A stretch of 64,000 bases of DNA from Bugula neritina (GCA_964035545.1 OZ037765.1:33603504-33667503); one strand, 5' to 3'; positions 310 through 63,892 are shown, numbered from the stretch's first letter. Numbers and translations: made by a program. Notes: generated by a model from the sequence alone, not told the origin.

Positions 310-344
310 GACTGCTATACGCAAGATCCCACTGCTGCCACCAC

Positions 345-3336: not shown

Positions 3337-3337
3337 C

Positions 3338-3355: not shown

Positions 3356-3405
3356 AATCGTCTGGTACAGACTAAGCTGATGCTCCCCCACGGGGAGAGA
3401 CAACA

Positions 3406-4506
3406 ATGGATCCATTGAGGCCAGCGCCAGAGCTCGGGCTCGATGATGAAGCAGCAGGAGGACGCTTCACCCTAGAGGCATTGATTCGGACTCTCTGGGA
3501 AGACAGGGCAGCTGCACAGGCTCCACCTGGTGACAGGTTCCGCCTTAAAGGGCCAGTCTTCGACGGTGAAGGAAATGTAGAACAATTCCTACAAGAATTC
3601 CGCGAGGTGGCCGTGGCCTCCCAGTGGCCGGCCCAGGTGGAATTACTGCAACTACGGTCCTGCCTGACAGGTCGAGCCAAACCCTATGCGGTAGGCCCGA
3701 ATAGAGACCACATCATTGAGGCTCTGCGCGGCCGCTTCGGATTTACCGTCCGGGACGCGAGAGCCCGCCTCCAAGGACTCCGACGAGACCCTAAGGTCTC
3801 ACTACAGGATCACGCCAACAAAGTGGAGCAGCTAGTCCAGGTAGCCTACGGTAACGTAGACCTGGAGTCACGCCAGGCCATCACCTGTGATATCTTCCTG
3901 CAATCGCTCAATAACCTGAGCCTGCAACGGTATCTCTTGGCAGCTGGGGTCGACACCATTGAGGCTGCTCTGGCCAGAGGAAAGGCGTACTACCAGATCG
4001 GCGGGAGTCAGGACTGTGACAGCAGTGCCCGACGAGTCGAGTCAGACTGGGGAGAGGCTGCCGAAGACACTCGGCCGAGGCCTCAAGTAGCGGCCGCCGC
4101 CACTACACCCCCAACCCCACCCGAACTCTCCATGGTATTGGAGGTGGTGGACAAACTGCAAGGAGAGATCGCAACATTGCGACGGGCCCAAACTACTGAC
4201 AGACCGGATCGGTCATATGGTAGTCAGCCCAACAAGGACGCTCAGTTAGAGCCTAGGGTAACAGCTACTGCACCTACCCCATCGACCTCAGCCGAAGTCT
4301 CCATGGTACTGGAGGTGGTGCGAGATCTACAGGCCGAAGTTAAGGCCCTGAGACGGGCCCAAACTACTAACCGGCCGAATCAGCCACGTAGTAGTCGCCC
4401 CGAAGGGTCTTCTCTCACGTGTTGGAAGTGTGGGACAACAGGTCATGTGCAACGAGACTGTCCCCGAGGACGCAGCGGTCTTTTAAACACCCAAGGCCTG
4501 CGGTAA
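3406..4506 (+). CDS. gag: Gag (capsid + CCHC zinc knuckle)
   Basis: 366-aa ORF after the PBS, with C-terminal CWKCGTTGHVQRDC knuckle. Confidence 0.93.
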   Translation: MDPLRPAPELGLDDEAAGGRFTLEALIRTLWEDRAAAQAPPGDRFRLKGPVFDGEGNVEQFLQEFREVAVASQWPAQVELLQLRSCLTGRAKPYAVGPNRDHIIEALRGRFGFTVRDARARLQGLRRDPKVSLQDHANKVEQLVQVAYGNVDLESRQAITCDIFLQSLNNLSLQRYLLAAGVDTIEAALARGKAYYQIGGSQDCDSSARRVESDWGEAAEDTRPRPQVAAAATTPPTPPELSMVLEVVDKLQGEIATLRRAQTTDRPDRSYGSQPNKDAQLEPRVTATAPTPSTSAEVSMVLEVVRDLQAEVKALRRAQTTNRPNQPRSSRPEGSSLTCWKCGTTGHVQRDCPRGRSGLLNTQGLR

Positions 4507-10346: not shown

Positions 10347-10563
10347 TGGTGGCACTTCTCTTTATGTAAATATATATTCTTGTGTGTATTAATTCATTAT
10401 CCCTTAGCATTTTCTATCTTATATATTTTTGTTTGTGTGACTAGATTAGCCATTCCAGAACTCCCTTACATGTATTTTCTTTTATTTTCTTCTTTTTTTT
10501 TATTATTATATTTTTTTTTTAATTATATCAGAAAGGGGTTGTACTTTCTGATGGAGGGGAGTG

Positions 10564-11280
10564 TGTGGTAAAATTGTGTATAGTAACTAATGCTTGTATT
10601 CCCCTTACTATTATTATCTTCATTCCCATGGAATGCGTGTTTTCTTAGATATACATCATTACTTAGCTATAGTATTGTAACAGCTAAGTGTTATGTTGGC
10701 AATGATAGGATTAGCTATTATTCCCAGCTACTTATTACTACTAACGTGACTGGATTAGCTATTGTTTCTGACGGCTCACAGGAACACTTATATAATCAAG
10801 ATAACCGGGATTTCCCTGCGAAGTTCGCTCGATTCGAGCGATTCCTTTATTCTAGCCCTGCGAATCCCCTGCGATTCGAGCGAATTCCCTCGAATTCGCT
10901 CAGAACATTCTGGTGGGAATGTTTCCCAATGTATAAAAGGAAGCCCTCAACACAGTAGAGTCAGTCTTCAGCCAGCAGCACAACAGGACACATCTCGGAG
11001 CTACCAAGCCAGGACAATAACACACGTAGTTAATTATCTTATACTTTGTTTACCAGTTTACTAGTAAGTTTTCCATACATGTAAGGAGTTGTCCTCCCTA
11101 ACTGCTATTTTTGGATTTATATATATTATGGAGTAAATAAAGGGGATTGTGAGTATTACATTTCTTATTTATTGTGCATAAATACCCTCTTACAAAGAGT
11201 CACTGTGTTCAATCAGCTAACAACCCACACCAATAATTGCATGCAGCGAATCATAACATTCTACGCATAAAATTATTACA
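10564..11280 (+). repeat. 3' LTR
   Basis: Direct repeat of 2620-3336, preceded by purine tract GGAGGGGAG and followed by TSD ATTG. Confidence 0.95.
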
Positions 11281-17448: not shown

Positions 17449-18299
17449 CTCTCAGGTAGACTGGATATTCTACATCTATTCATATCCAACTGTTTAAGTG
17501 ATGTGAATGATGACACAACATCTGGTACTGTGTTGAGAGTATTCTCTCCTATGTCTAGTTCCTCTAACTGAGTCAGCTGACTAAGACTGTAATATAAAGA
17601 AATAGCATATAGATTACACTAGTGCTGTATAGTGTAACAGTATAGTGACACATAATGTATGTCTACTATAAACTCCTCAACAAATTCATATATAAATCAT
17701 ATCATGAGTGGAAGTGCTCTGACTCAGATATACTCAACTAAATACTCACTTATTCAGACTCTTCTTGTCAGTTATCTTACGGAGTACCAAACAAACAGCA
17801 TGAGAAGCAATCTCTCCTATATTCTTAGGAATTGTCCCCTCTAACTTGAGGTGAGTGAGTTGATAACTCCCAACTTGAGTCTTCACTTCACTCAAAGTAT
17901 ATGATTTGGTTCTAGCATTGTATACACCTTCCAAGTTTACAGGATCCTGTCCAGAATGTCTGAACCAGATTCTGAAAATCCCTGTAACACAGAGATTGTA
18001 GTATGTATTACCATACTGTAGCATTACCATTACCACACATACCTGGCTGTAACTGATGCTTATAATATTATATAATGTTTTCTACTTTATCTAATAATAC
18101 ATAATTTAGAATAGTGTAAATGTGTACGTTTACAATTGAAGTATATTAAATATATTGCTTAAAGTCAGTGAATTGTGACAAGTGTTGTATTTTCTACATT
18201 AATAAGTCATTTGATGATTTCCTAATCCAAAAGAAAGAGCATACGAATATCTGAGAGGATTGAAAATCTCACAAACGGTTACTACATACCTGAAGACAT
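17449..18299 (-). CDS. 5' part of third LRR-ROCO-caspase paralog (gene C): exons 18290-18299, 17750-17981, 17449-17586; no downstream exons seen in the window
   Basis: MSS-G|IFRIWFRHSGQDPVNLEG...KSLN then a 138-nt LRR cassette (LSQLTQLEELDIGENTLNTVPDVVSSFTSLKQLDMNRCRISSLPE). Strong similarity to 42052-42584, including the intron. GT-AG sites intact. Confidence 0.75.
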
Positions 18300-26700: not shown

Positions 26701-27800
26701 CTACTCAGTATCTGGACAGACTTTGTATTTAGGAAACAATAAAACCTTTCTCAATCCAGTGAGAGTCTTTGTTACAACTGGAACCTGCTGTGTCATGTGA
26801 CTATGTTTCTCAGCCAACTTTTTAGTGACCTTTTTGACTCTCTCCTGTACCTGTAATAATCAACATGGTTTATATAGAGACACCATAACAATACATATAT
26901 AGCTTTGTTTCTAACTTGAGGAATTAATGAGAATGCATTGGTTCAATAATTTGGGAAACTGCTATATAGATAATTTGAATATAAACATTGTGTACTGGCT
27001 GTATATAGGGGCCAATAAACATGGTATTAGTCTTATTTAAATATTTCTTTTTCAACTATGCTTACATAGATAAATAAAGATATAAAAAGTGCAGTGGCAC
27101 ATGACACACATCACATGCAACACATCACATGGCACACGTCACATGCAACACATCACATGGCACACATCACATGACACACACTACATTAAAGCAGAATAAT
27201 ATATGACTTACGATATCAAACAGAGAAGCAAGATCTCTATGAGAAGAATGTTTGTACAGAGTTTTAACCAACTCTCTGATGAATGGACTTCCATAGTTTG
27301 GATCTCGTATAGAATTTCGACCTGAAAAAAAATTAGTTCTTTCAAGGTTTAAAAGAGTTGACATGACACTAATATACTTGAAATACATCACTGCATACAC
27401 TCTACATTTTAGGCTTAAACTACATATGATGAGTATTAATGGTCAGCAAGAACAGAAAACATAAATTATGAGGCACTTATGCTAAATAAGAGTTTTATAG
27501 AAAGTAATATCAGTATTTCTATTTTAAGATAAAAGTATTTAACAGCCCGAACCTCAGCAGCTAGTCATCATGCAGAGAATACCTACAGCTACCAACATAT
27601 AGATGCATATATACACAGTATCATCAGTTACAAGTAGTTGAATGATTTACCATCAAAGCAAGACTGCAGTATCAACAGATCATCAACATTCAAGTCATTC
27701 CGTCTGCTTGTAGTTTGTTGAGTTTCCTGTTGAGTTTCCTGTCTGGTTGAACTCTCTCCAGACTCAGCCTCTACTCTCTCTATCTGGGCATCTGTGGCAG
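26701..27800 (-). CDS. Gene A caspase inter-subunit linker and small (p10) subunit exons (27651-27800, 27212-27321, 26701-26850)
   Basis: DDLLILQSCFDG|RNSIRDPNYGSPFIRELVKTL...HRDLASLFDI|VQERV...QQVPVVTKTLTGLRKVLLFP matches the caspase p10 pattern (D.L...S...G..S.R....GS.FI..L; Q.P....TL.K.L.F). Confidence 0.88.
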
Positions 27801-30800
27801 CTACACATTCCAATAACGATATTTTATAGATGTAAAAGAAACACTACTCTATCTATTGTATCTCTCTACTGAGAACTATACAATGTTCAATGTTCAGTGC
27901 TATACAAAAAGTTCTGAATATGAAGAAGCAAACTAGTTTATTCACAGAGAGACAACATATATCTTTCAGAGATTTCAGTAAACTGCTCATATGTTACAAA
28001 TATATGTTACAAGATATGAGTAGCACTAACATATTGTATGTACAACTCACCACTTCTACAAGCTACCACGATCACCACTTTAGGTTTCCCAGCCATGTGC
28101 TTGAAGTTGTCGGAAGACAACAAATCAAAGACATTGAGAAGCTTCACTGGTTTCACATCAGTTCCATAGAGAACTCCATGAGCACCAAATGTTCCACCAT
28201 GAGACATGAGTACAGTGACATGCATACCATAGTCTTCATTGTCAGGGCGTTGAATCTCATATTTGATATCCTTCAGCATTTGCTATCACTGGATTCAATA
28301 TATATGAAATAAGTGTGAGAATAATAATCAGCATTATATTGAGTTTGTGTTATTATGTACGTGTTAATGGAGCTTATATATATAGATGACAGAAATTGAT
28401 TGACATAAAGATTTCTGAAAGAATCCCTGACAAATTTTACTCATGCAGTGGTAAAATATTATTATATATATTAGTTTTTATCTACATTATGTTTAAATAT
28501 TGTATGTCTAAATAAAACTTATTTTGTAATGGATTTTGTCAGAGTATGTGCTGAAATGATTTGGGATTTCTGATCACTTAGAAAAGATGTTTCTGGTTGG
28601 CTTTGACTTTACCGTTTCTATAAAACCTATACTAATTATAGCTAACTTTCATTGCATGCTATTTTTAGCTGCTAAACTGAACAGCCTAACCACTGAAATA
28701 GCTTGAAAGTTCAAACTTTGAACTTCCAATTCATATTAGTAATTAGGCTGTGCAGTGCAGCAGCTAAAAATGACATGAACGAAAGTTAGCTATAATTAGT
28801 ATAGGTTTTATAGTAGTGGTAAAGTCAAAGCCAACCAGAAACGTCTTTCCCAAGAGATCAAAAATCCCAAATCATTTCAACACATACTGACACAAAATCC
28901 ATTATAAAACAAAATTAATTAGTTGGGCATACAACCTTATAACATTATTTAAATGAAAACTAATGTATATAAGTATATTTTACTACTGCATAAGTAAAGT
29001 GTGTCAGAGATTCTTCAATATATATCATGCTAGAGGACTTGGCTATAAAGTATACTTATGTGATGTTAATAATGGAAGCCAGTTCACCTCAGCTGTTCTA
29101 TTATATTTCACATCAACTTCAAAGTCCAGATTTCTCAGTACTGCTAGAGTATTTGTTACATCCACATTGGAACCTGTTCTCTTTAGCTGAGGATAACCAT
29201 GGAAGACATTGTTGTTGATAATCAAAACTTTTCCTCTGGCAGTCTCACTCATTCTGTACACCTGGGGGATGGTAGCAATTGCTGGTGTGATGTAAAACTT
29301 AATATTTCAGGTTTACATTGCAACAAGTTAAATTTTTGTGGCACAAACACAAATCCTTGCACTAGCTGTTACAGAACTTGTAAATTATGAAATGCAGAGC
29401 TTTTTTGGCATATAGATAACTCCCAGCTCTAATTTTGGGCTATGTGGCAACCGGTGGGAGGGGATGCGATGAAATGCACAGTTACAGTATTACTTCACAT
29501 GTAAGAAATCTCACTCACTAACCACAATAAAAAACATGCATATATCTCAATTATTCAGTGTTACTTGTTGAGAATAATAATACACAGGTTTATGTTTTTC
29601 AATCTAAAGTATTTTCTGAGTTAATTTAAAAAATAATAACAGCTTCCATCATGTTACTGAAATCAGATTTAGTGCTGATCAGATAATGCTCAGTCTGAAA
29701 ATGTGTATGGAGGTACCTTGTTAGAATAGAATAATTGTTTAATGTCTTCTCTTCTGGTTGTAGAAACCTCCATCTTGACATTGTGTTCTTCTTCAGGAAG
29801 GAAGAAATCTTTATGATCAGAGATATCACTCTCAGCATCAGATTCAACTTGAGTCTCATCTAAGAATATTACTAAGTAGTGTACTATAGGATAGATTGCA
29901 TTTCATCTAATTAGGCCAAGCTTCTCAGGTATTAATTATCAACACATATGATAACAATCATTTACATAGTTCTAGGATATGAAATCTGAGGTATGCTAAC
30001 ATGTAACTGGTTAGCTATATAGGACACACTAATACCATAAGAGTACTAGAATAGCAATTACCTTCAAAACTGCTAGACTGTTCATATTTGCTAAGGAATT
30101 TTGAAAGATCTTCTTTTTGTTCTTTAGACAAACTGGGGACTACAACGAATAATATGACTAAATTGATAAACACACAACCATATAATATTATAAACTAAAC
30201 ATAACCTTAGTCAATTAACATAACAATAAATAAATACATTAGTATATAAATTGTGAATATAGTCAACCAGAACGTGGTTGTAGTATGTGATACTCACAGG
30301 GGTTGAAGAGACACTCAGGTACAGAGGGATCTTTCTTGCATGTGAAGTGTTTAGTGTCAGATGAGTGGAGAGAAGACTTCTCTCTTTTGCCATGGTACTG
30401 GACCCAGGAGGGATTCATGAGTTTGGAAGGGTGGCGGTCCTCTTCTAGCCCGCAGTGAGGACAGAAGAATTTGCATCCTATTTTACAGGCACGCCATCTG
30501 GTCTCAACGTATTCAATAGAGGAATTAGTGATGTCAACCAGAACTTCCCATGCTCTGCATACTTGACTGGAGTCAAAGGAAACACAGATGTTTACTATTC
30601 CTGACTTGTAGTCATGTACCAGCTGATAGGTTACATCTTTGTTCACCACACGAGCTCCATTATTTTTGGCTGTTATGGAGTCTGACTCTTGAGAGAAAGA
30701 ATTGAGCATGTCTACAGCAAGCTGGTGGTAGGCATACTGTGGTAGTGGAAGGCCATCAAAACGTAGCTGAGCATGAAAGGTGACGCAACTCCTTGTGTTA

Positions 30801-33800
30801 GGTAAGTTGTCACTAAGGAACTCCTTACAGAAGTATGGCACAATGAATGAGCTTTCCTCATTGTTTAGCTTAGTGTGATACATTATTCTGAATGTCAGCA
30901 AAATGTTAGCAGCAACTCTCATGGCAGCATTCTCAACAAATTCCGTCTCTGTTTGTAGCAAATGTTCAAACAGCTTACCATGCATGATTCCTGTTGAAGT
31001 AAATTTATCTGCAAATGACCTGTATTCATCCAGAGTAAGAAGTTGTTGCACAGCCGAAGTGGAACTGCTAAAATCTGACAGACGCCGCTGCCAAACTGTG
31101 TCATCATGAGTGAACAGAACTTGCAGGAGTGAAGTGACTGTGGGGATGCGATAGAATATGTAAGGACGCAAGTCCTCATTATTCTTGTACCAGAGCAGCA
31201 TGCCACAGTTGTGCATGTATGTCAGGATGATGTCAAGTTGATTTTCGGTTAATGAGATGCTGTCGGAAAACTGGCTGAAGATGTCTTGGAATGACTTGTA
31301 ACCTTTGTCAAACTTCTTCAAGGCTTGTTCAACTTCCACCCAGGTTCTTGGTATTACTTTCACAAACTGCTTACTCTCTCTCAGCAGTCTCTCTCTCAGC
31401 TGTATGAAAGCTTCACAGTAAGCACTTCCAACCTTATAAATATCTTCAGCTCTGAACATATTCTTTCCTTCAAAATGTTTAATTGTTGAAAAAGCACCGC
31501 CATTTTTCCACTTGCTCTTTTCATCGCGACTGATGATTTTAAAAACATGCTTTGTGTGATGGAAAAAATGATCTTCAATCTCTTCAACCTCGCTTTCATC
31601 AATCTTATCCAAATGAGTCAACACTAAGGTAGGAGGTCCAAGGTTAGGGTAGGTCAGGTAGAGATGTGACAACCAATCAAAATACAGTCGTCTCACTGCC
31701 TCATTACCACCAATATCATGCTGCAGGGCTTCATACTGCTCCAGACTGACGACAACTATTGGGATACAATTTGGTTTCAAAGTAAACCGATATGTCGACT
31801 GATAGATTTCATGACCTCCAAAGTCAATGAATCGCAGCACATCATTATCTACACAAACATCTTCCATTTTGAACACAGGAGTTGTATCATCATCAAGTCC
31901 ACCATTTACTCTGTGAGTAAGAACTCTGGTTCTATCTGTACTCTGTAGTGTCTTAATCAGACTAGTCTTGCCAGACATAGTCTGACCAATAACAGCAACA
32001 GTTACCATGGAAACTTCTACACTGTCACCGTTTCTAATGTCTGTGTAGTATTGTTTGATAGCACCTGCTCCTTGTTGACAAACTTCATATGGTGGTGAAG
32101 CCAATGACACACAACCCTTAGCATCTATATGTGTTAGTAGAGGCATGTCAGCTATCTCTGGTGTCAGAACTTTCAGAGATTTATTTCCACTGAGGTTAAG
32201 ACTTCTCAAGCTAGATAATTGGCTGAAGTTATCAGGTAAACATGTGATCTGGTTTTTTGTCTCCTGATCTTCTAGAAAACTTGCATTGGAAATATTCAGG
32301 TGCTGGAGGTTTGATAGGCTCACAATACTATATAAATAGAATTTTTTTCAGTAATTAATATTATAATTCAGTCAAAATTATATGAGAGAAAAGTTTTTTT
32401 TCTAGCTCTATATAAATGCAAATAATAAAATTAGATTATAACTTACTGACTTATCCTTATTTCACTGTACCAATATAGTATACATTAGTATACATATTAG
32501 GGGTAACAGGGCAAAACGGGCCAAAATTTGAATTTTTTACTCGCATTCGTCTGTTTTTCAAGTTTTCAAGTTGCCGGGGCAAAATGGGCCAGTTTTTAGT
32601 AACATGTGTTACAAAATTCCAGGTGACTTTGTTTCATGAACTGTAGTTAAGGTGGCTGAAGCTTGTGGCTGGAGTGTGGAAATGCTGCGGGGGGGGGGGG
32701 GAAATGAGCAAATCATAATTTATTTATTTTAATCAAATACATGTATATTCTCTCAGTGGTGTAATAAACAATGAATATCATGACTATCTACTAGTAGCAA
32801 CAGCAGAATGTTTTGTATGAAATATACATTGGCGAAGTTATAATCTCACCAGATGTATGTATTAGGGGAGCTTCACCTTGTAGTTTGGTAGTCTTACCAT
32901 GATGTTTTTGATATTTTACAGAAAGAAAGTCAGAAATGGCAATATCTATAGATTTCATTAATATTTCAACTAATTTTTTGGGCAAACAAATTAATAACAG
33001 TAATTAAGGTGCAATAGTCAGGTGGCCCATTGTGCCCCTATCAACGTGCCCCTTTGTGCCTCTTGTGGCCAAGGTGAAAATAAATGTGGCTCAAGGAAAA
33101 TTTATTTTAGAACTTGCTATTATACCAGTTAAACAATGTAGAGACAAGCAATGGCAACAATATCAGTAGAACCTAGGTTTGTTACCTTTGAGTGCAAAAA
33201 GTTACAATGGCAACAATATCAGTAGAAGCTAGGTTTGTTACCTTTGAGTGCAAAAGTTACAATGGCTGAATAATTATAATGTCATTACCTTTTTATTAAA
33301 AAAATCACAACTCTAAGTCATTAAGTTCTTGCACAATTTGACCCGCTTTTTTACCCCTATGACCATTGTGCCCCTCCCCCACTGCCCCTATACACTACTA
33401 TACGTAGTATACATTACTATACATAGTATACATTACTACGCATAGTATACATTACTATGCATAGTATACATTACTATGCATAGTATACATTACTATACAT
33501 AGTATACATTACTATGCATAGTATACATCACTATACATAGTATACATTACTATACATAGTATACATCACTATACATAGTATATATTACTATACATAGTAT
33601 ACATTACTATACATAGTATACATCACTATACATAGTACACATTACTATACATAGTATATATATTACTATACATAGTATACATTACTATACATAGTATACA
33701 TTACTATGCATAGTATACATTACTATATACATAGTATACATCACTATACATAGTATACATCACTATACATAGTACACATTACTATACATAGTATATATTA

Positions 33801-36800: not shown

Positions 36801-39800
36801 ACGGAGGAAGATATTATAATGGTGGCTAAGATGAAGATACAGAGAAAGAGAAAGGGAGAGGGGGGAGGGGGCAAAAAAAGGTTAATGGATACAGTGAAGG
36901 ATGGCATACTGAAATGTGGTTTCTCAGATGAAGATGTTGACAATAGAATCAGATGACACTCTCTGATAACACTTGGTGCCCTGCAAAACCGCTACTCATC
37001 CTGGACCACAGCGTACTGGGTGAGCCCTATAATGAACAATTTGCTGCCTTCCCATGGCCTCTCAGGGGCAACAATGTAAAATATCGGAAAGGGAGTCATA
37101 CTAAATGTCTTGGTAGAAGGAAAGTGTGATTTGGTGACACTAGTGCTTTTTTTCAGGATGACTATTCATACAAGCTACCAAGTTTATGCTATGTTGCTAC
37201 AATTATGCAAAGTGCTCCTCCATGACATCTACAAGACAAAAGGTTTGGGAAACCAAGGTCAGCAATGCTATTTGCAATGTGCCTTTAACTTATGGACTTT
37301 GCCTCCTACAGATGAAGCTATTGGACAATGTCACCAGAGCACACCTCCAGGTAGCCATATGAAACTGCGGCATTAAACCCACTGGAACATTGGTAGGTGA
37401 TAGGGAATCTAATAGAATCTCTTTTCCCAAGAGGAGTAGGAAATGATGTTGTGCTTACACCAGTCAGTATCATGAAGTGGATCATGTTAGTTAATTTGGT
37501 GTGCACTCGACGACTCTGGCTTTTGGCGAGTTTTTACAATTTAGCTGCTATATTGTATATATACTTTTGCCTCAAACTATCAAAATTTTAACAAATAAAA
37601 CTGAATAATTAAGGCTTTTCCAATTATGCGTGATTTTCTATGTCTATTCCTAATTTATTATTACATTGGGATATTATATAGGCCGTGATGATTCACAAAT
37701 GTATATTTAGCTCGTATGACAATGACGCCGCGCTTAAATGTTGCAGGACCTCTTCCCAGTCATTTTTGTTATGCATAGATAGAATCAACGAATTCTATTA
37801 CCCCATATAGTAAGTTTTTATGAATTTTGAGCAAACTTTAAAATGTTTGATCATAATCTGCTGATGTATACTAAATAAAGTAAAATGGCCGAAATTCATT
37901 AAATGCTCCTGTGGAAGCCAACAATCATGCAAAACAACACGATATGGCTATTCTAGTACATCTATCCCATGCACAGAGTTCTGCCCTTGTGAAGCAGTAG
38001 CAGGAGTGTGCTGCAATGAACTAACATTTCTAATAAATGCTAATGATAGAAAAAAAATGAAAAAGGTATTTAATATGAATATATGAGTAAAAGTTTGTCG
38101 CATTTGTACGATTATATGTATGTTCAATTTTAACTTTAGCTGAGCAATATGCTGCATCTGTATCTTTTTTCACTTTCTATTCACTGGCAATAAGCAAATT
38201 TTTTCTTTATATATCTGTCCAGTGTCCAAACAGTTATTCAAAAACCTTGTATCATTTTTCTGCACCATATGTGATGTTTTATTGAAGCAATTCCGATTTT
38301 TGAGCTGAGAAACATGTCTCTTGGGTCTTTACTTTGATTCCTTTTTACTGGCATGACACATATTCATTCCAAAAGTGCGCATCTATTTTTTTCTTCAAAA
38401 AAATTTTGTTTTTGCAACATAATATAGACTTTATGCCGACTAGATTACGATTTTGTCATATTTGGCGGCCATCTTGGATTTTTCGAAATGCTCAAAGGTG
38501 GCAGGTCCACACCCACCTGGAAACATCTACCTGGACCCTCAAGATAAATAATCAAAAGAGAAAAAAACTTTATCCGAGATTGCGAACCTAACCCCCAGTT
38601 CTGCCAGACTATATGGGTAGAAACTGTTAAGAATGGCAGCATCACTATAAAATGACTGACACAAGCCCTTGTGCTCAAAAATGCATTGAAAGACATATTA
38701 TAATGCTGCTGCAATACATCCTGAAGTGAATGTCAGAAATCTCAAGTGCACTGGTGTATGTCAATGCAGGGATTGTCTAAACAGAAGATACTTTGGAGGA
38801 AAATAAGCAGATGAAATTAATGGCAGCAGTAATATAATTATGGTAAGAAAACTCTACACAATGGAACACTACTTTGAAAATTTTGTTATATAGTTTGCTC
38901 CCTAATATTTTTGTGATTTCGAAATGAATTTAAAGAATCTTGTTACTTTTTACAGATATTTAGTGATCACCGTCAGATCAATAGAAGACTCATTTGGTAA
39001 GTTCTCAAAAGCTGTCAACATGTAACGATAGTATATGTCTTTTAAACACTTGATTCTTTGACACATCATCATAAAAAGCTTTTGATCTTACATAACTATA
39101 GCTTCTTTAATAAACATATTATGTAGGCTTCTGCCAAATATTATAATGTGCCATCCATATAGCAAACATGTGTTTCTATTAACAACTCTAAAATAGTGCT
39201 TTGCAATTTATAGATTCAGAATCAGTGTAGAACTATAAAAAAGAAACAACCAATTTTGATTTGTCACCAACTCTTATTGTTTTTATAGAGGGCTAGTTAG
39301 TTAATAGTAAATGCTTCTTTTATTACCCATCAAAGATGTCGATTTGCGTTTTTGTGCAGAAGCTTGAGTTAGAGTAGAGATAGAATTCTAGAGTATAATA
39401 TGTAAATTTTGATCTAGAATAACAACTTTTTTTGAGTGGCGACCTAGTAAAGTGTAATAAGGTGAGTTTTTGAGCACTTTTTAGGAGGTTACTTCTAGAC
39501 CAATTGTATAAGACAGGAAGATCAGGCTGAGTACAGGTAATACGAGTAAGCTTTGTATCTTGTATATTATTTTATATACTTTAAGTGGTGTATATATATA
39601 ACTTACCAGGAGATAATAAAAATATTGTGAAGTAGTAATAAACATGTGACACACAAACCTATCAGGTAGACTGGATATTCTACATTCTCTCATATTCAAC
39701 TGTTTAAGTGATGTGAGTGATGACACATCATCTGGTACTCTGTTGAGAGTATTGTATCCTATGTTTAGTTTCTCTAACTGAGTCAGCTGATTGAGACTGT

Positions 39801-42800
39801 AATATATAGTTATACTATGGGAAAAGAATAAAATTACACATCACATATGTATATTATGCAGCACAGAGATATGCATGGGACCACAACTCATATTATACTA
39901 ATACAATATCTATTAGTTGTCAAAGTTATAATATCCCAGTTAAACTGGTGGCTTTAGCATCTAATATGACTTTTACAAATAATTATACTTGATTTTTGTG
40001 TATGTCAGAATATTAAAAATGTGTGATTCACCTATGAAATTTTTACAAGTCTGAATAATTCTACACATGGTCATGCATAAGGGTGCTTCTCGAAATTACT
40101 GTGGTCCACCCTTACCATTTCATTGCATAACACACGGAACTCAGGCTGAGTACAGAGATTATAGCTATACTTTGTATCCTGTATATTATTTTGTATACAA
40201 TAAATTGTGTATAAATAATATAGTTGAAAGGAAGGCAATTATGATGTGAAGTAGTAATAAACATGTGACACACAAACCTCTCAGGTAGACTGGATATGCT
40301 ACATTCACTCATATCCAACTGTTTAAGTGATGTGAGTGATGACACAACATCTGGTACTGTGTTGAGAGTATTCCATCCTATGTCTAGTTTCTCTAACTGA
40401 GTCAGCTGACTGAGACTGTAATATAAAGTTATACTATGACAAGAGAGTAAAATTACACATAACATGTATTTTATACAGCACAGAGATATGCATGTGACCA
40501 CAACTCATATTTTACAAATAATATATTATTGATGATTTGTCAAAGTTATATCTCAAGTAAATCAATGGCCTTAGCACCTAATATGATGCTTACAAATATA
40601 CTGGGTTTTGTGTATGTCATATATAACAAAAAATGTTTTAACTACTTATGAAATCTTCATGAGTGCTAATAATTTTATTTATTGTCATTCGAGAGGAGGG
40701 CTTTCCAAATAATTGCATCCTAGCTTTACTATTTAATTGTATAACACAGGGAACTCAGGCTGAGTACAAATATTATAGCCACACCCTATAGCCTGGATAT
40801 TATTTTATATACTATATAAGTTGTGTATAAATATAAGTTACAGAGTAGTGATAATGATGTTGTGAAGTAGTAATAAACATGTGACACACAAACCTCTCAG
40901 GTAGACTGGATATACCACAGTTATTCATATTCAACTGTTTAAGTGATGTGAGTGATGACACAACATCTGGTACTGTGTTGAGAGTATTCAATCCTATGTC
41001 TAGTATCTCTAACCGAGTCAGCTGACTGAGACTGTAATATAAAGTTGTACTATGACAAGAGAATAAAAAATTTGACATAATATTTTATGCAATACTGAAA
41101 TATGCATGAGGCCACAACTCTGTATTTCACAGATATATTAATTAAAAGTAAAAATAATACCCAGATAAAGTGGGCTATAGCACTTCATATGACTATATAC
41201 TAATATGTATCTACTAGAAAGTATACAATATGCTAAGCTTTAAACGTGGTCATAATTACACTCTACCCTTACTATTTAATTGTATAACACAGAGAACTCA
41301 GGCTGAGTATAGAGATTATAGCCACACCCTATAGCCTGGATATTATTTTATATACTATATAAGTTGTGTATAAATATAAGTTACAGAGTAGTAATAATGA
41401 TGTTGTGAAGAAGTAATAAACATGTGACACACAAACCTCTCAGGTAGACTGGATATTCTGCAGTCACTCATATCCAGCTGTTTAAGTGATGTGAGTGATG
41501 ACACAACATCTGGTACTGTGTTGAGAGTATTCCATTCTATGTCTAGTATCTCTAACTGAGTCAGCTGGGAGAAACTGTAATATAAAGTTATACTATGACA
41601 ATAGAATAAAATTACACATAACATGTATTTTATGCAGCACAGAGATATGCATGGGACCACAACTCATATTATACTAATACAATATCTATTAGTTGTCAAA
41701 GTTATAATATCCCAGTTAAACTGGTGGCTTTAGCATCTAATATGAAGCTTAGAAATTTACTGGTTTCTCTTGTATGTCATAACATCCGAAATTCTTGAAT
41801 TACTCATGAAATTTTCACGAGTCCTAACACTTTTACTCATGGTAATTTGAGAGGAGGGTTCCCCAAATAATTACACTCTATCCTCATTATTGAATTGTAT
41901 AACACAGGGAACTCAGGCTGAGTACAAATATTATAGCCACACCCTATAGTCTAGATATTATTTTATATACTATATGAGTTGTGTATAAATGTAAGTTACA
42001 GAGTAGTAGTAATGATGTTGTGAAGTAGGAATAAACATGTGACACACAAACCTTTCAGGTAGACTGGATATACCACAGTGATACATATTCAACTGTTTAA
42101 GTGATGTGAGTGATGACACAACATCTGGTACTGTGTTGAGAGTATTCCCTCCTATGTTTAGTATATCTAACTGAGTCAGCTGAGAGAGACTGTAATATGA
42201 AGAAATAGCATATAGATTACACTAGTGCTGTATAGTGTAACAGCATAGTGACACATAATGTATGTCTACTATAAAATCCCCAACAAATTCATATATAAAT
42301 CATACAATGAGTGGAAGTGCTCTGACTCAGATATACTCAACTAAATACTCACTTATTCAGACTCTCCTTGTCAGTTATATTACTGAGTACCAAACAAACA
42401 GCATGAGAAGCAATCTCTCCTATATTCTTAGGAACTGTCCCCTCTAACTTGAGGTGAGTGAGTTGATAACTCCCAACTTGAGTCTTTACTTCACTCAAAG
42501 TATATGATTTGGTTGTAGCATTGTATACATCTTCCAAGTCTACAGGATCCTGTCCAGAATGTCTGAACCAGATTCTGAAACTCTCTGTAACAACACAGAT
42601 ATTGTATTATCATCATACAGAGGCTGCAACTAATGCTTATGATATTCTAAATGTGTGGCTACACTTTCTTTTTACCACAACTTTATCACAGCCAGTTAAT
42701 GCAGGTTAAATAATTACAGATGGTTCACAGTGTATTCTACTTCATGTATAAATATTTTGTCAATCTCTCAATAATCGCCAAACCCATTTAGTTGCAGCTG

Positions 42801-43623
42801 CTATAATAGTTATCAAATACATTTTTTATAATCAGTTGAAAGAACTTTGGACCTACCGGACAGCTCGAGTATTAGAAGTCATATATATATGCTAAGTATA
42901 ACTATACCAGTCTGTGATAAACTCATAATGGTCAACTCTGTACACATGACATGCAGTTTAAACAGGCAATTATTGTGAATGTTTTTAATTACAGAGACCA
43001 CTTTTTAAGTCTATATAACTGCCTTTGAAATTGTCTAACATTTTATATAGTATTTTAAAGCAGAAAATCCACCTTATAGTTTAACAAAAAGTTGGCTTTT
43101 AAACCAGATTTGGTTGGGTGTTACACATTTTACCATGCAATCATTGTGTTGCTTTTCATCCTAAAGACATGACATGACCATCATAGTTAATATTTTAGCT
43201 AATGAGCGTCAATGCTATACCACGCTCTACTTTTCTACCACTATACTATTAGGAACGTAATCCCAGCATGTTATTTGGAAGAAAGTGCTTTTGGTATTTT
43301 TCCAAAGCTCTTCTGATATATTCAAGTAATGCAGGATTTATATTCATATATAGCAAGATATAGTTGCTTACTTAATGTAGCCAACCCAAGTTTTTTTTTC
43401 TACACTCTTTTGTGACATCTACCGGTTGTTCTGCTTGTAGCTAAAAGCCTCTAATCTATATAATGTGTTTCTTTTTAAATTTTGCATCAGAAAAGATTAT
43501 GTTTTCAGAATATTAGAAGCATGAAATGCATTTAGCTTTAGTCCAATTTAACAGAGAAAGAAAAACACTACATTGAATACATTAGAATAATGGTAGATTA
43601 CCTCCAGAAGTGTCTTCTTCCAT
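26701..43623 (-). CDS. Gene A: LRR-ROC-COR-caspase fusion, ~1336 aa. Coding exons 43602-43623, 42353-42584, 42052-42189, 41437-41574, 40894-41031, 40278-40415, 39659-39796, 30298-32327, 30062-30139, 29717-29859, 29088-29261, 28051-28282, 27651-27800, 27212-27321, 26701-26850
   Basis: All junctions GT-AG and phase-compatible; total 4011 nt = 1337 codons ending in TAG. An in-frame TGA lies upstream of ATG 43623. Exon sizes are reproduced in paralog B (the ROC exon is 9 nt longer there). The acceptor of the 27651 exon has in-frame alternatives. Confidence 0.85.
28051..29261 (-). CDS. Gene A caspase large (p20) subunit exons (29088-29261, 28051-28282)
   Basis: YRMSETARGKVLIINN, RTGSNVD, LMSHG (catalytic His), GKPKVVIVVACRS (catalytic Cys). 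Confidence 0.92.
28490..28940. mobile_element. Foldback/MITE-like inverted repeat in a caspase intron
   Basis: ~28528-28689 is the reverse complement of ~28743-28905 (e.g. GGCTTTGACTTTACC / GGTAAAGTCAAAGCC). Paralog B has only one arm (~55440-55690). Ends approximate. Confidence 0.7.
30298..32327 (-). CDS. Gene A large exon: last LRRs + ROC GTPase + COR
   Basis: LRRs, then SPPYEVCQQG cap, P-loop GQTMSGKTS, FIDFGGH (DxxG), LVLTHLD (ROC G4), COR motifs IPRTW and YMHNCGMLLWY, C-terminal CPHC. Confidence 0.92.
32500..33388. mobile_element. Non-autonomous DNA transposon (MITE) flanked by TA; paralogous copy at ~59199-59997
   Basis: GGGGTAAC.GGGCAAAA...TTGTGCCCC...CCCC termini with repeated subterminal GGGCA(A/C)AA motifs. 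Same site in genes A and B. Confidence 0.65.
33389..33870. repeat. 19-bp minisatellite (TACATTACTATACATAGTA), paralogous to 59998-60280
   Basis: About 25 tandem units. Confidence 0.93.
34962..38611 (+). mobile_element. Second Academ-like family nested inside copy 2
   Basis: TIRs TAGTCTGGCAGAA / TTCTGCCAGACTA extending >150 bp; TSD TAT. The empty site is visible in the paralog at ~62640. Decayed transposase: SSRTAKLW, DMTIEVTFVRFGHSKG, LPPTDEA, KCSC...CTEFCPC. Confidence 0.8.
36640..37030 (+). mobile_element. 3' fragment of a non-LTR (RTE-like) retrotransposon inside the nested Academ
   Basis: Decayed frame MRRRPLQ*YGHVRRRD...KKRLMDTVKD...DVDNRIR* resembles the RTE-type RT C-terminus (RLRWYGHV.RR...RW.D.V). 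Confidence 0.6.
39659..42189 (-). CDS. Five tandem 138-nt two-LRR exon cassettes of gene A (39659-39796, 40278-40415, 40894-41031, 41437-41574, 42052-42189)
   Basis: Each is TACAG|T...AG|GTTTGTGTGTCACATG, phase 2-2, 46 codons = 2 x 23-aa LRR; unit spacing 543-619 bp. Confidence 0.93.
42353..42584 (-). CDS. Gene A N-terminal cap exon (degenerate LRR, no signal peptide)
   Basis: SFRIWFRHSGQDPVDLEDVYNATTKSYTLSEVKTQVGSYQLTHLKLEGTVPKNIGEIASHAVCLVLSNITDKESLN; same 232-nt size in gene C. Confidence 0.8.
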
Positions 43624-53120: not shown

Positions 53121-56100
53121 CTACTCAGTATCTGGACAGACTTTGTATTTAGGAAATAATAAAACCTTTCTCAAGCCAGTAAGGGTCTTTGTTACAACTG
53201 GAACCTGCTGTGTCATGTGACTATGTTTCTCAGCCAACTTTTTAGTGACCTTTTTGACTCTCTCCTGTACCTGTAATAATCAACATGGTTTAAATAGAGA
53301 CACCATAACAATACATATATAGCTTTGTTTCTAACTTGAGGAATTATTGGGAATGCATTGGTTCAATAATTTGGAAAACTGCTATATAGATAATTTGAAT
53401 ATAAACATTGTGTGGTGGCTGTATATGGGGGTCAATAAACATGGTATTTATCTTATCTAAATATTTCTTTTTTAACTATACTTTCATAGATAAATGAAGA
53501 TATAAGAAGTGCGGTGGCACATGACACACACTACATGACACATCACATGACACATATCACAGGACACACATCACATGACACACACTACGTTAAAACATAA
53601 CATATGACTTACGATATCAAACAGAGTGACAAGATCTCTATGAGAAGAATGTTTGTACAGAGTTTTAACCAACTCTCTGATGAATGGACTTCCATAGTTT
53701 GGATCTCGTATAGACTTACGACCTGAAGTAGTGTAATAAATGACTTATATAAAAGACATGCAGTCATATAGAGTCAGAAGCACCACTTGATAATACTAGG
53801 TCAGGGATTCTGATATAAGCAGACAGAGTTTACAGAACTCTTTGGTAAATGAGATGTTAAGTTGTGTATCTGTTACTTTATAATTATCAGAAGAAGTCAA
53901 TATGACCTTGCTATTGGGAATAACTTGTTCCCTACTGTATAGCAGCTAATGAACAACTACAAAAACCACACAACTACAAATAATTGTAAAATATAAAATA
54001 TAAACTGTAATTGAAAATATAGTTCATACTATAATGTGTGAGTATCTGTAAGGTTGCACTGCTATGATAATTCATTCTATCTGTACAACACTTATGATCT
54101 GCATGTACCACTAGATGAGCATACAGGTGGCCCTGAAGTACTTTACTGATAACAGAAAAGAAAATACTCCAAGCTATTAATTTGTGTATGAATTAAATAA
54201 TAGTATAAAAATAAATATAATTAAATTGGAGAAAAAGAATATAATATATTGCTACAAATTGAAAACATGCAAATAAATCAATGAGCATTAAGTAGACCAG
54301 ACATGTCTGTAACAGCTTACCATCAAAACAAGACTGTAATATCAACATATCATCAATGTTGAAGTTCTTCCTTTCCTTTTCAATTTGCTGACCTCCATCC
54401 TGACTTTCCTCTCCTTCTGAGCTTTCCTCAGATTGGGCTTCTATTTTCTCTACAAGTACACAGACAGTAGCTACATATATTGTATGATAACAGATTCTGT
54501 CAACATATTGGTGAAGTTTGAATTTTCACAGCATTCAATTTCTCAAAATCTGATCTGTTACTTGTTTGATAGTGTGGTGGGAGATAACTCCACACTGTGA
54601 AGTGAGTTGGGCTGTAAGAGATCTATAATAACACTAATGAGCCTTTTCTAACAGACGTGTGTAGATATATTTCAGTGTATATTATAGGTATGTTTTAGTA
54701 GATTATCCAAATTATTGCTAAACATGAGTTTTATGTTTCTTTGATAAATTGTAAAAGCTGAACCAAAAACGTTTTTAAAGTTTTGCATTGGTGCAACAAT
54801 CAGAAATATAAAAAATATAAATACATCAAATTAGCTCATACACTTACTAGCCATTCTGAAAGTTACAGCGGAAATGAAATATTGGCAGTTAATGCAAACT
54901 TTTTGTAAAAATAAAAACTCAATATATAAAAATATTTAACCGGTCAGCAATGGGAAGAAATAGAAACACTGAATTGTTATGTGATAAAATACTGCAGTGT
55001 TTACCATTTCTACAGGCCAGCAAAATCACAACTTTAGGTTTCCCAGCCATGTGATTGAAGTTGTCCGATGATAGCAGATCGAACACATCTAGAAGTTTTA
55101 CTGGTTCCAGATCAGTTCCGTATAGCATTCCGTAAGCTCCATAAGTGGCACCATGAGACATGAGTACAGTGATATGCATACCATAGTCTTCATGGTCAGG
55201 GCATTGAATCTCATATTTAATATCCTTCAACATTTGCTGTCAATAAATTTAATATATTAAATTAGTGTGAGAATAATAATCGGCATTAGATTGAGTTTGT
55301 GTTGTTATGTGTTAAGGGAGCTTATAGATAGATGACAAAAAGTAATTGGCATAAAGATTTCTGAAAGAATCCCTGACAAATTTTACTTATGCAGTGTTAA
55401 AATATTATTATATATATTAGTTTTTATTTACATTCTGTTTAAAGATTGTACACCTAAATAAAATTTGTTTTATAATGGATTTTGTGTCAGTATGTGTTGA
55501 AATGATTTGGGATTTCTGACCGCTTGGAAAACACATTTCTGATTGGCTTTGACTTTACCGTTGCTATAAAACCTATACTAATTATAGCTAACTTTCATTG
55601 CATGTCATTGTTAGCTGCTAAACAACACAGCCTATAATCACTGAAATAGCTTGAAAGTTTAAAGTTTGAACTTTCAATTCATATTAGTAATTAGTTCACC
55701 TCAGCTGTTCTATTATATTGCACATCAACTTCAAAGTCCAGATTTCTCAGTACTGCTAGAGTATTTGTTACATCCACATTGGAACCTGTTCTCTTTAGTT
55801 GAGGATAACCAGGGAATACAATGTTGTTGATAATCAAAGCTTTTCCTCTCGCAGTCTCACTCATTCTGTACACCTGAGGGATGAATGCAATTATTGGAGA
55901 TGTGTAAAACTTAGAAAATCAAGTTTATACTACTACAAGTAAAATTTATGTGGCACAAACACAATCACTTGCACTAGCTGTTTCAGAACTTGTTAATTAT
56001 GAAATGCAGAGCCTTTTTGTATATGGATAACTCTTAGCTCTAATTTTGGGTTATATGACAACCAGTGTGAGGAGAAGCAATGAAATGCACAATTACAGTA

Positions 56101-59100
56101 TTACTTCACATGTATGAAATCTCACTCACTAACCACAATAAAAAACAAGCATATATCTCAATTATTCAGCGTTACTTGTTGAGAACATTAATACACAGGT
56201 TTATATTTCCTAATCTAAAGTACTTTCTGAGTTACTTTAAAAAATAATAACAGTTTCCATCATGTTACTGAAATCAGATTTAGTGCTGATCAGATAATGC
56301 TCAGTCTGAAAATGTGTATGGAGGTACCTTGTTAGAATAGAATAATTGTTTAATGTCTTCTCTTCTGGTTGTAGAAACCTCCATCTTGACATTGTGTTCT
56401 TCTCTAGGAAGGAAGAAATCTTCATGATCAGAGAGATCACTCTCAGCATCAGATTCAACTTGAGTCTCATCTAAAATATTACTGATTAGCATAAAGCATG
56501 CTATAATATTTACTATGTACTGTATACGAAATTCTAAGATAAGATTGTTATTGATTGTTCAGTAGTACACACCTCTATGATGGCACAGAATCACATGGTA
56601 TGTGTCAGCATTACATTAACACATTCCATTAATGGACATTATTACATTATAACATATACTTATAAAATATAACAGAGATCATGATGCAAGTTGAATTGTT
56701 AGTCATCTAGCTACTTCAACATAGTATGAGAAAAGTATATTATTTACCTTCAGAGCTGTTAAATCTTTTATATTTGCTGAGAAAGCTTGAAAGATTTTCT
56801 TTCTGCTCTTCAGACAAACTGGTGACTGTAAAAAGTAATATGAATGTATTGATGAACACACAACTACATATTGAACTATTATAAAGTAATGAAACCTTAC
56901 TCAAATGATTTAAAAGCTGCATACATATGAGTATATAAATTGTGAATATAGTCAATCATAACGTGGTTGTAGTATGAGATACTCACAGGGGTTAAGGAGA
57001 CACTCAGGTACAGAGGGATTGTTCTTGCATGTGAAGTGTTTAGTCTTAGATGAGTGGAGAAAAGACTTCTCTCTTTTGCCATGGTACTGGATCCAGGAAG
57101 GATTCATGAGTCTGGAAGGGTGGCGGTGCTCCTCTAGCCCACAGTGAGGACAAAAGAACTTGCATCCTATCTTACAGGCACGCCATCTGGTCTCAAAATA
57201 TTTAATAGAGGAGTTGGTGATGTCAACCAGAACTTTCCATGCTTTGCATACTTGGCTGGAGTCAAAGGAAACACGGATGTTTACTATGCCTGACTTGTAG
57301 TCATGTACCAGCTGATAGGTTACATCTTTGTTCACCACACGAGCTCCATTATTTCTGGCTGTTATGGAGTCTGCGTCTTGAGAGAAAGAATTGAGCATGT
57401 CTACAGCAAGCTGGTGGTAGGCATACTGTGGTAGAGGAAGACCATCAAAACGTAGTTGAGCATGAAAGGTGACACAACCCCCTGTGTTGGGTAAGTTGTC
57501 ACTAAGGAACTCCTTGCAGAAGTATGGCACAATAAATGAGCTTTCTTCATTCTGTAGTTTACAGCAGTACATTACTCTGAATGACTTTAGAATCTTAGCA
57601 GCAACTCTCATGGAAGCATTCTCAACAAATTCTGTCTCTGTTCGTAGCAAATGTTCAAACAGCTTAACATGCATGATTCCTGCTGAAGAAAATTTATCTT
57701 CAAATGACCTGTATTCATCCAGAGTAAGAAGTTGTTGAACAGTCGAAGTGGAACTGCCAAAATCTGACAGACGACGCTGCCAAACTGTGTCATCATGAGT
57801 GAACAGAACTTGCAGGAGTGAAGTGACTGTGGGGATGTGATGGAATATGTAAGGACGCAAGTCCTCATCATTCTTATACCAGAGCAACATGCCACAGTTG
57901 TGCATGTATGTCAGGATGATGTCAAACTGCTTTTCAGTTAATGAAATGATGCTGGAAAACTGGCTGAAAATGTCTTGGAATCGCTTGTAACCTTTGTCAA
58001 ACTTCTTCAAGGCTTGCTCCACTTCCACCCAGGTTGTTGGTATTGCTTTCACAAACTGCTTACTCTCTCTCAGCAATCTCTGTTTTAGCTGTATGAAAGC
58101 TTCGCAGTAAGAGTTTCCAACTTTATAAATATCTTCAGCTCTGAACATATTCTCTCTTTGAAACAGTTTTATTTTTGCAAAAGCACCTCCATTTTTCCAC
58201 TTGCTCTTTTCATCGCGACTGATGATTTCGAAAACATGCTTTGTGTGATGAAAAAAACGATCTTTAATCTCTTCAACCTCGCTTTCATCAATCTTATCCA
58301 AATGGGTCAACACTAAGGTAGGAGGTCCAAGTTTAGGATAGGTCAGGTAGAGATGTGACAACCAATCAAAATACAGTCGTCTCACTGCCTCATTACCACC
58401 AACATCATGCTGCAGGTCTTGATACTGCTCCAGACTCACAACAACTATTGGAATACAATTTGGTTTCAAAGTAAACCGATATGTTGACTGATAGATTTCA
58501 TGACCTCCAAAGTCAATGAATCTCAGCACATCATTATCTACACAAACATCTTCCATTTTGAATACAGGAGTTGTATCATCATCAAGTCCACCATTTACTC
58601 TGTGAGTAAGAACTCTGGTTCTATCTGTACTCTGTAGTGTCTTAATCAGACTAGTCTTGCCAGACATAGTCTGACCAATGACAGCAACAGTTACCATGGA
58701 GACCTCTACACTGTCACTGTTTTTAATGTCTGTGTAATATTGTTTGATAGCACCTGCTCCTTGTTGACAAACTTCATATGGTGGTGAAGTCAATGACTCA
58801 CAATAATCAGTATCTATTTCTGTTAGTAGAGGCATGTCAGCTATATCTGGTGTCAGAACTTTCAGAGTATCATTTCGCCTGAGGTTAAGATGTCTCAAGC
58901 TAGATAACTGGCTGAAGCTATCAGGTAGACATGTGATCTGGTTTTTAGCCTCCCGATTTAGTATATATTGTAGAGAATGTCCATTAGAGATATTCAGATG
59001 CTGGAGGTTTGATAGGCTCACAATACTATATAAATACAATGTTTATTAGTAATTAATATTATAATTCAGTCAAAATTATATGAGAGAAAAGTTTTGTTTC

Positions 59101-62100: not shown

Positions 62101-63892
62101 AATGGAGAGCAATAAACTTGAGTTCATGGCAGCAGACAGCTGACAACAGAGCTGCGTGGAGAGCTGCAACCAAATTTAAGCCTAATCCATAAAACAGTCA
62201 TAGTCGTATCGACTGACTGCAAGAGAGATATATATATATATATTTAGATGTCAATTTTGCTACAAATTAATGTGGATATGAGTTATGTGCAGTGAGTGCA
62301 CTTCCATGCTTTACCAGGTTGTGATTAAATTAGCACTTTTATGGAAAAAAAAGAAACCAATTTATATTCCTTCTTGAAAAACCATTCAGAATGTGTTGAA
62401 AGCTTTGAACAGCTTGGAAAGTATACTTCAAGTCACAACTGCACCTACTTAAATAGAAAGTTTGTAAATAAGCAGAGATGATGTTTGATATGCTTTATTC
62501 TGTTCTCCAACAAAGATGACTCAATAAAATTTGCAGCATTCCCCACAAAAATGAATTTATGCTGCACGTAATATATTTATCAAACAGCCACCAAGAGAAG
62601 GGCAACAATTGCTTTTGTCAATACACCATTTCCAGATTATTATGAGTAGAAATTGTTGAGAATGGCAGCATCACTATAAAATGACTGACTCAAGCCCGTG
62701 TGCCCAAAAATGCATTGAAAGACACATTATAATGCTGCTGCAATACATTCTGATATGAAAAACAAAAATTTCAAGTGCACTGGTGTAGGTCAATGCAAGG
62801 ATTGTCTAAACAGAAGATACTTTGGAAGAAAATACACAAATGAAATTAATGACAGTTATATATAATTATGGTAAGAAAACTATGTACAATAAAACACTAC
62901 GTTGAAACATCTGTTATATAACTTGCTTCAAACAAGAAATTTTACAATATATACATGTTTCAATCATCCCAATATTTTTGTGATCTTGAAATAAATTTAA
63001 AGAATCTTGTTACTTTTTACAGATATTTAGTGATTACCGCCAGATCAATAGAAGACTCATTTGGTAGGTTCCCAAAAGATGTCAACATGTAACCATAGTA
63101 TATGTCTTTTAAACACTTAATTCTTTGACACATCAGCATAAAAAGCTTAGGTGATCTTACATAACTAGCTTCTTTAATAAACTTATTACGTAGGCTTCTC
63201 CCAAATGTATTAAGTATCATCCATATAGCAAACATGTAATTTGATTGACAACACAGTTTTGAATTGAATAGTGTTTTAAAATTTATAAATTCAGAATCAG
63301 TGTAGAAATATAAAAAAGAAACAACAAATTTTAGTTTCTCACCTACTTTTACTGTTTTTATAGAAGGCTGGTTATTAGTGGATGCTATTCTGCACAATCC
63401 TCGTTTACTTTTATTACCCATTTAAGATGCCAACTTGCTTTTTTGCAATAGCTTGAGTTAAAATAAAGATAGACTTTTAGAGTATGTAAATTTGGAATCA
63501 GCACAAACTGTTGATCTAGAAACAACTATTTTTGAGTGGCCACCTAGTAAAGTGTAATGAGGTGAGTTTTTGAGCACTTTTTGGGAGGTTACTTCTAAAC
63601 TGACACTGAACAGTCAGGTTGTGTACAGGTAATATGACTACGCTTTGTATCCTGTATATTATTTTACATACTTTAAGTGGTGTATATATATATATATATT
63701 AAAGAGAGGTAATAGTGATATTGTGAAGTAGTAATAAACATGTGACACACAAACCTCTCAGGTAGACTGGATATACCACAGTGACTCATATTCAACTGTT
63801 TAAGTGATGTGAGTGATGACACATCATCTGGTACTCTGTTGAAAGTATTGTATCCTATGTCTAGTATCTCTAACTGAGTCAGCTGAGAGAAA
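53121..63892 (-). CDS. Gene B: LRR-ROC-COR-caspase paralog, 5' end beyond the window. Exons 63755-63892, 56987-59025, 56748-56825, 56328-56470, 55700-55873, 55005-55236, 54321-54470 (or -54449), 53613-53722, 53121-53270
   Basis: Same exon phases and near-identical sizes to gene A; GQTMSGKTS, DFGGH, THLD, LMSHG, LLACRN, SIRDPNYGSPFI; no stops or frameshifts seen. Confidence 0.87.
56987..59025 (-). CDS. Gene B large exon: LRR + ROC + COR
   Basis: ORF 56952-59039 trimmed to splice sites TATAG|T and CCCT|GTGAGT. Confidence 0.92.
59998..60280. repeat. 19-bp minisatellite
   Basis: Paralog of 33389-33870. Confidence 0.9.
60495..63602 (+). mobile_element. Degenerate Academ-like transposon, copy 3 (same insertion site as copy 2)
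   Basis: TAGTTTAGAAGTAACCTCC ... GGAGGTTACTTCTAAAC. Same left junction CCCTTACCATTTCATT as 34079. FHALPGCD remnant ~62300. Confidence 0.75.
62095..62225 (+). mobile_element. Short RTE-like LINE 3' scrap
   Basis: Translates as WQQTADNRAAWRAAT, like the W...A.DR..WR end of RTE-type ORFs. Confidence 0.4.
63755..63892 (-). CDS. Last 138-nt LRR cassette of gene B
   Basis: FSQLTQLEILDIGYNTFNRVPDDVSSLTSLKQLNMSHCGISSLPE with the same splice flanks as the other cassettes. Confidence 0.9.

Follow-up and report, generated by a model that had tools for sequence, protein, structure and literature searches.

A putative family of LRR-Roc-COR-caspase receptors carrying two-LRR exon cassettes in the bryozoan Bugula neritina

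Leucine-rich repeats (LRRs) joined to a Roc GTPase and a COR domain are found in brown algae, bacteria and animals. In brown algae, the LRR-ROCO genes have expanded and carry their LRRs on separate 72-nt single-LRR exons of symmetric phase 2, which are gained, lost, shuffled and alternatively spliced, with positive selection on the binding face and a proposed immune role (Zambounis 2012, PMC3341825; Teng 2024, PMC11378527). In bacteria, LRR-AP-GTPase(Roc)-COR-effector conflict proteins combine fast-evolving LRRs and Roc-COR with at least 24 alternative C-terminal effectors, caspase among them, and are encoded by multiple intronless paralogs (Kaur 2021, PMC8195603). The animal ROCO proteins MFHAS1/MASL1, LRRK1/2 and DAPK1 share the LRR-Roc-COR core, but are few-copy and conserved, without caspase or cassette diversification; animal ROCO proteins have been linked to the response to infection (PMC4104024). 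Here we describe a stretch of 64,000 nts of the genome of the bryozoan Bugula neritina (GCA_964035545.1, OZ037765.1:33603504-33667503; hereafter the window), in which genes of one family carry tandem two-LRR exon cassettes upstream of Roc-COR and caspase exons. The family looks like a set of putative, undescribed intracellular immune sensors diversified in the germline. We regard it as probable, though well short of certain, that bryozoans have a multigene family of one-chain cytoplasmic receptors whose sensor arm is formed by the cassettes.

An earlier note on the window, made from the sequence alone, had described seven cassette exons with particular residues in each copy, and all seven were recovered as described: each is 138 nts long, lies on the minus strand between an AG acceptor and a GT donor in phase 2/2, is stop-free and encodes two 23-residue LRRs (Pfam LRR_8, LRR_4, LRR_1). 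The note placed five cassettes in gene A and one each in genes B and C, which holds for A and B, whereas gene C has four, three of them past the end of the window. It is established that the concave strand positions of LRRs face the ligand, and 12 concave codons were predefined as x2, x3, x5, x7, x8 and x10 of LxxLxLxxNxL. Across the seven copies these codons hold 19 extra amino-acid states, as against 8 at the other 33 (permutation p=1e-4). The note's statement that the x positions differ in every copy is right for the combination, which is unique to each copy, but codons 8, 31 and 32 (x2 of both repeats, x3 of repeat 2) are almost fixed. For the site analysis, the window and 200 kb beyond it were read (264 kb), yielding 52 cassettes, of which 46, drawn from up to 360 candidates, are intact. 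Every one of these 46 is distinct in DNA, with 44 distinct concave combinations, while degenerate cassettes of 129 or 141 nts preserve the frame. Codons 9, 11 and 13 vary, whereas the strand-inward codons between them, 10 and 12, show little or no variation. When a natural Watersipora homolog is modelled with AlphaFold, strands fall at cassette positions 9-13 and 32-36 (moderate confidence, with a repeat pLDDT score of about 60-72), a placement that agrees with an alternation of exposed residues and with the loop that comes next.

The earlier account of the cassettes thus stands, but it lacked both the complete caspase at the end of the chain and the homogenization of the scaffold between genes. 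An exon-by-exon check of gene A gives 15 coding exons from 42926 to 26701, encoding 1335 aa, with AG/GT sites and consistent phases throughout and no internal stops; the predicted splicing joins a start exon, an N-cap, five cassettes, an LRR/Roc/COR exon, two linkers and five caspase exons. In positions of the window, these are:

42908-42926, minus strand: inferred first coding exon with the coding start, MSLSQT, and a phase-1 donor; paralogs E and G have an ATG-bearing counterpart
42353-42584, minus strand: N-cap exon, 232 nts, phase 1/2, a degenerate LRR-like cap with the motif WFRHSGQ
42052-42189, minus strand: two-LRR cassette exon A1
41437-41574, minus strand: cassette A2
40894-41031, minus strand: cassette A3
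40278-40415, minus strand: cassette A4 (Pfam LRR_8, LRR_4, LRR_1)
39659-39796, minus strand: cassette A5, followed by an intron of 7331 nts
30298-32327, minus strand: final LRRs, Roc GTPase and COR, 2030 nts, phase 2/1, stop-free
30062-30139, minus strand: linker exon 1
29717-29859, minus strand: acidic linker exon 2
29088-29261, minus strand: caspase large subunit exon 1 (KRTGS)
28051-28282, minus strand: caspase large subunit exon 2, with the catalytic His (SHG) and Cys (VACRS)
27651-27800, minus strand: caspase inter-subunit linker exon
27212-27321, minus strand: caspase small subunit exon 1 (SIR...GSPFI)
26701-26850, minus strand: caspase small subunit exon 2, with the stop codon

The introns between the cassettes of gene A measure 405-481 nts. 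Pfam gave no match to the N-cap exon with its W(F/Y)RHSG motif, and a search with this exon returned 17 matches, the best being short unnamed fragments; it is apparently a family-specific cap.

By its predicted domains, the family is a member of the ROCO proteins. Gene A has the Roc motifs GQTMSGKT (P-loop), DFGGH and THLDK; its Pfam Roc match (E=1.7e-4) is below the cut-off, and within the PDB it is most similar to structures of Roc-COR and LRRK proteins. COR follows directly, with COR-A at E=1.4e-8 and 35.2 bits against a cut-off of 35.3, and COR-B is found in the relative P0007. Peptidase_C14 is above the Pfam cut-off, SHG and ACR align to caspase-3 and exons for both the large and the small subunit are present. 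Hence, judged from fold and His/Cys dyad, the domain is a caspase (C14A); its two S1 arginines appear to be kept (KRTGS, SIR), and any Asp-specific cleavage by it is putative. ETQQ repeats occur in the caspase linker exon and are expanded in paralog E, and AATD/A at the junction of this exon is a candidate self-cleavage site. Since no signal peptide or membrane segment is evident in the gene A model, the receptor is likely cytoplasmic.

Variable concave LRR residues are shared with lamprey VLRs and with the NLRs of plants and animals, and NLRs likewise combine a sensor with a nucleotide switch and a death effector. However, NLRs rely on NACHT or NB-ARC and engage caspases by way of adaptors, whereas the switch here is Roc-COR and not a STAND NTPase. 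VLRs are extracellular and are assembled somatically into an incomplete gene, while gene A is complete in the germline and is not an incomplete gene with flanking donor cassettes. A close parallel is the one drawn in the earlier note, LRR exon shuffling in brown-algal LRR-ROCO genes, which the literature bears out (PMC3341825, PMC11378527). In both cases the LRRs lie on fixed-length exons of symmetric phase (138 nts, phase 2/2 in Bugula) and exposed LRR residues show positive selection, subject here to the synonymous baseline discussed below. The unit differs, being a 138-nt two-LRR exon instead of a 72-nt single-LRR exon, and the brown-algal proteins have no caspase (the word is absent from PMC11378527, in which three members have a different peptidase). 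Because the lineages are independent, the two exon designs are likely convergent. In contrast to the bacterial conflict proteins, the Bugula family has a fixed caspase, with a p20/p10 organization resembling animal caspases, and its LRRs are exon cassettes.

Diversifying selection at the concave residues, as the earlier note proposed, is supported by the 46 intact cassettes. A fixed-sites codon model, run with two trees (all codons; scaffold and flanks) and two frequency sets, gave a ratio of nonsynonymous to synonymous substitution (omega, dN/dS) of 4.0-9.7 for the concave codons and 0.57-0.67 for the scaffold. With their own synonymous rate, the concave codons gave 2.4-4.1, exceeding 1 at p 3.5e-4 to 4e-9 (likelihood-ratio test); taken together, the estimates are 2.4-9.7 for the concave codons and 0.6-0.8 for the scaffold. 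Nine concave codons individually exceed 1, with 14 and 37 the highest, and codons 1 and 2, adjacent to the acceptor, score as well. Selection is nevertheless weaker than the raw dN/dS suggests, because the within-exon synonymous baseline is homogenized and inflates omega. Introns diverge by 0.15-0.28 beyond about 30 nts, and by 0.20-0.23 among 18 cassettes of R1, in which the nonsynonymous difference (pN) at codons 14 and 37 is 0.65-0.68; against introns, only these x8 codons appear clearly to exceed the neutral level. A fair reading is that x8 is under strong positive selection, while the other exposed codons are shielded from homogenization by selection. An adenine-only mutation pattern, as left by diversity-generating retroelements, was rejected by eye since the variation at codons 14 and 37 involves every base.

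The homogenization itself is seen at fourfold-degenerate sites. Between gene A and genes C, D and E, the scaffold differs at these sites by 0.017, 0.012 and 0.030, compared with 0.089, 0.128 and 0.171 in the Roc-COR exon, and within gene A by 1/179. Over scaffold synonymous sites, the range between genes is 0.01-0.04, as against 0.09-0.17 in Roc-COR and about 0.2 in introns. The scaffold is thus 5-10 times more alike than the genes bearing the cassettes, and concave residues are about 50% different both within and between genes. Leucine codons are mixed, hence codon bias does not explain the uniformity, and a value of 0.19 in Watersipora argues against a universal splicing constraint. We infer that the scaffold is homogenized by exon-limited gene conversion. 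In a tree from an alignment including flanks, cassettes of different genes are mixed, the first cassettes form one supported clade and gene E shows block duplications.

The gain and loss of cassettes in the germline, which the earlier note expected from their symmetric phase, is borne out within and between assemblies. Cassette number is 5 in gene A, 1 in B, 4 in C, 8 in D, 7 in F and at least 6 in G (1-9 per gene in R1, R3 and R4), and, in gene E, which spans about 80 kb (L010-L013), about 22 cassettes are flanked by a single N-cap and a single Roc-COR. The cassettes of gene E were amplified in blocks, including frame-keeping degenerate copies of 129 and 141 nts. In an independent B. neritina assembly (GCA_010799875.2), the unique flanks of locus L022 match those of gene D (91-96% upstream, 86-88% downstream). 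L022 has an N-cap and 4 cassettes, while gene D has 8 cassettes and no N-cap; no cassette is shared, the two sets being 6-19 nts and 4-9 concave residues apart. The Roc-COR of L022 is closer to gene C (94.9%) than to gene D (90.9%), hence orthology with D rests on the flanks. Of 14 complete cassettes from the second assembly, none has an identical counterpart among the 46 of the first, the sampling being incomplete.

A locus of Watersipora subatra contains seven two-LRR exons, each of 138 nts and in phase 2, together with Roc-COR and an adjoining caspase model, and its codons 11, 13, 14, 34 and 37 are variable too. Its scaffold is unlike that of Bugula and yet uniform within the locus. By this comparison, the cassette design is common to two cheilostome genera, with apparent lineage-specific concerted evolution. 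Genome-wide, the 216-Mb B. neritina genome holds at least 74 Roc-COR exons and 360 cassette candidates on at least 6 contigs, with eight Roc-COR exons of at least 81% identity on C1 at 32.86-33.66 Mb. For 63 of the 74 copies, caspase exons follow on the same strand at a distance of no more than 8 kb (paired by eye). The closest named proteins are B. neritina EB796 models (81-94% identity), followed by those of W. subatra, whose homologs were automatically named MFHAS1 homolog.

Taken as receptors, these proteins would join an N-cap, a variable number of two-LRR exons, a Roc-COR GTPase and a caspase in one chain. The symmetric phase-2 exons are duplicated and deleted in frame, as the copy-number differences show, and gene conversion limited to the exons would even out the scaffold among cassettes and genes, as synonymous sites suggest. 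Selection would keep the concave strand and loop residues different, most strongly at x8. A ligand, possibly a pathogen, parasite or non-self protein, could then bind the LRR face and alter the nucleotide and dimer state of Roc-COR, a module known to cycle through dimers (PMC4104024). Two caspase domains would thereby be brought together, leading to cleavage-driven cell death or inflammation. Initiator caspases are activated by proximity, and the overall logic would be that of an NLR inflammasome in one polypeptide.

Several observations weigh against this interpretation. The caspase cysteine motif, VACRS in gene A and LACRN in gene C, departs from QACRG. Multi-nucleotide codon changes and conversion inflate the codon tests, and mean pN over the 12 concave codons is 0.26-0.30, about 1-1.5 times the intron divergence. 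Swapping of LRR1 and LRR2 half-cassettes is suggested by shared patches; an incompatibility-distance test gave p=0.014, but a parametric bootstrap gave p=0.025 under one model and 0.59 under another. Finally, the second assembly is a draft and may represent a cryptic species, its flanks being 86-96% identical. The resemblance of mean concave pN to intron divergence, together with the weak constraint suggested by the scaffold omega and the persistence of some degenerate cassettes, would fit a scheme without positive selection, in which concave codons drift near-neutrally, purifying selection and conversion freeze the scaffold and the repeats provide an arm for structure or spacing. We consider this unlikely: codons 14 and 37 have reached saturation, with about three times the divergence of introns, conversion tracts could not leave out individual codons in alternation (10 and 12 versus 9, 11 and 13) unless selection acted, and variation recurs at many of these positions in Watersipora.

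The receptor could also serve allorecognition, distinguishing self from non-self in the fusion or rejection of colonies and zooids instead of sensing pathogens. The host is colonial, a death effector is present and the cassettes of the two assemblies differ to an extreme degree, but the model without evident signal peptide or membrane segment points to the cytoplasm and the family is spread over at least six contigs and not one locus, which makes this role improbable. Somewhat more doubtful still is a combinatorial receptor, VLR- or Dscam-like, whose cassettes would be picked or rearranged by cells somatically or during splicing. Symmetric phase and uniform splice sites would allow it, the near-identical scaffold would suit template switching and brown-algal ROCOs splice LRR exons alternatively; however, the genes are complete in the germline, no empty VLR-like gene was seen and no docking-type inverted repeat longer than 10 nts was found in a cassette unit. 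An extension in which the scaffolds actively serve as a pool of templates, with colonies or zooids expressing variants outside the inherited order by somatic conversion or combinatorial skipping, is similarly speculative; if true, it would give a lophophorate a variable repertoire wired directly to a caspase. An assembly artefact or decaying pseudogene repeats, which the tandem repeats, the split of genes B and D and a gene C start exon apparently out of phase might suggest, is very improbable and largely refuted by cassettes that differ mutually with introns 75-85% identical, by a fully open gene A and by the same design in an independent assembly and a second genus.

Receptors diversified in the germline thus remain the preferred interpretation. 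Their parts are known separately, in brown-algal LRR-exon ROCOs and bacterial LRR-Roc-COR-caspase proteins, and their combination in an animal appears to be new: a literature search that lay outside most subscription journals yielded no paper describing an LRR-Roc-COR-caspase family in bryozoans or other animals. A search with the caspase region for fusions in other taxa returned Bugula only, although it was length-limited and the blank says little. The NCBI model EB796_010943 omits the Roc domain despite an open genomic exon (L022 18707-20800). Public models separate Roc-COR from the caspase, and the fusion may have been overlooked for that reason. Bryozoan immunity is sparsely studied in the literature searched. 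If functional, the family would represent an animal lineage with a large, fast-diversifying intracellular receptor family in which Roc-COR takes the place of NACHT and the caspase is part of the same chain, and a convergence on the brown-algal LRR-exon strategy. Caspase activity would then offer a readout of what ancestral ROCO proteins (relatives of LRRK2 and MFHAS1) do with LRRs and a GTPase. The cassettes would also show cleanly how a scaffold can evolve in concert while its binding codons diversify.

The other family exons in the window are:

17750-17981, minus strand: gene B N-cap exon, with a candidate start exon at about 18290-18299
17449-17586, minus strand: gene B single cassette
63755-63892, minus strand: last of the four gene C cassettes
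56985-59027, minus strand: gene C Roc-COR exon, approximate ends
53121-55873, minus strand: gene C caspase exons (SHG, LACRN), paralogous to those of gene A

Gene B represents a 5′ half, made up of a start exon, an N-cap and one cassette, and has no downstream Roc-COR of its own. Gene D is without the start and N-cap exons that the other assembly has, and its upstream flank runs straight into an inter-cassette intron at C1:33585066 (L003). The two lie 36 kb apart with two LTR (long terminal repeat) elements between them, and may be one 9-cassette gene joined by splicing, or both broken. The start exon of gene C (L005, about C1:33669860) has an ATG but lacks a phase-1 donor that would fit the N-cap exon; it may be defective, or another start may be used.

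The first of the LTR elements, at 2618-11280 of the window, is a young Ty3/Gypsy-type element with 719-bp LTRs that are 99.6% identical, an open gag-like frame (3406-4506) and an open pol-like frame (4419-10346) with a long C-terminal extension; its LTR has a 98% match at C1:32992825-32993544. The second, at C1:33598933-33604199 (L004 and window 1-700), has 354-bp LTRs that are 99.4% identical and a 98% copy in the opposite orientation at C1:33673287-33682965.

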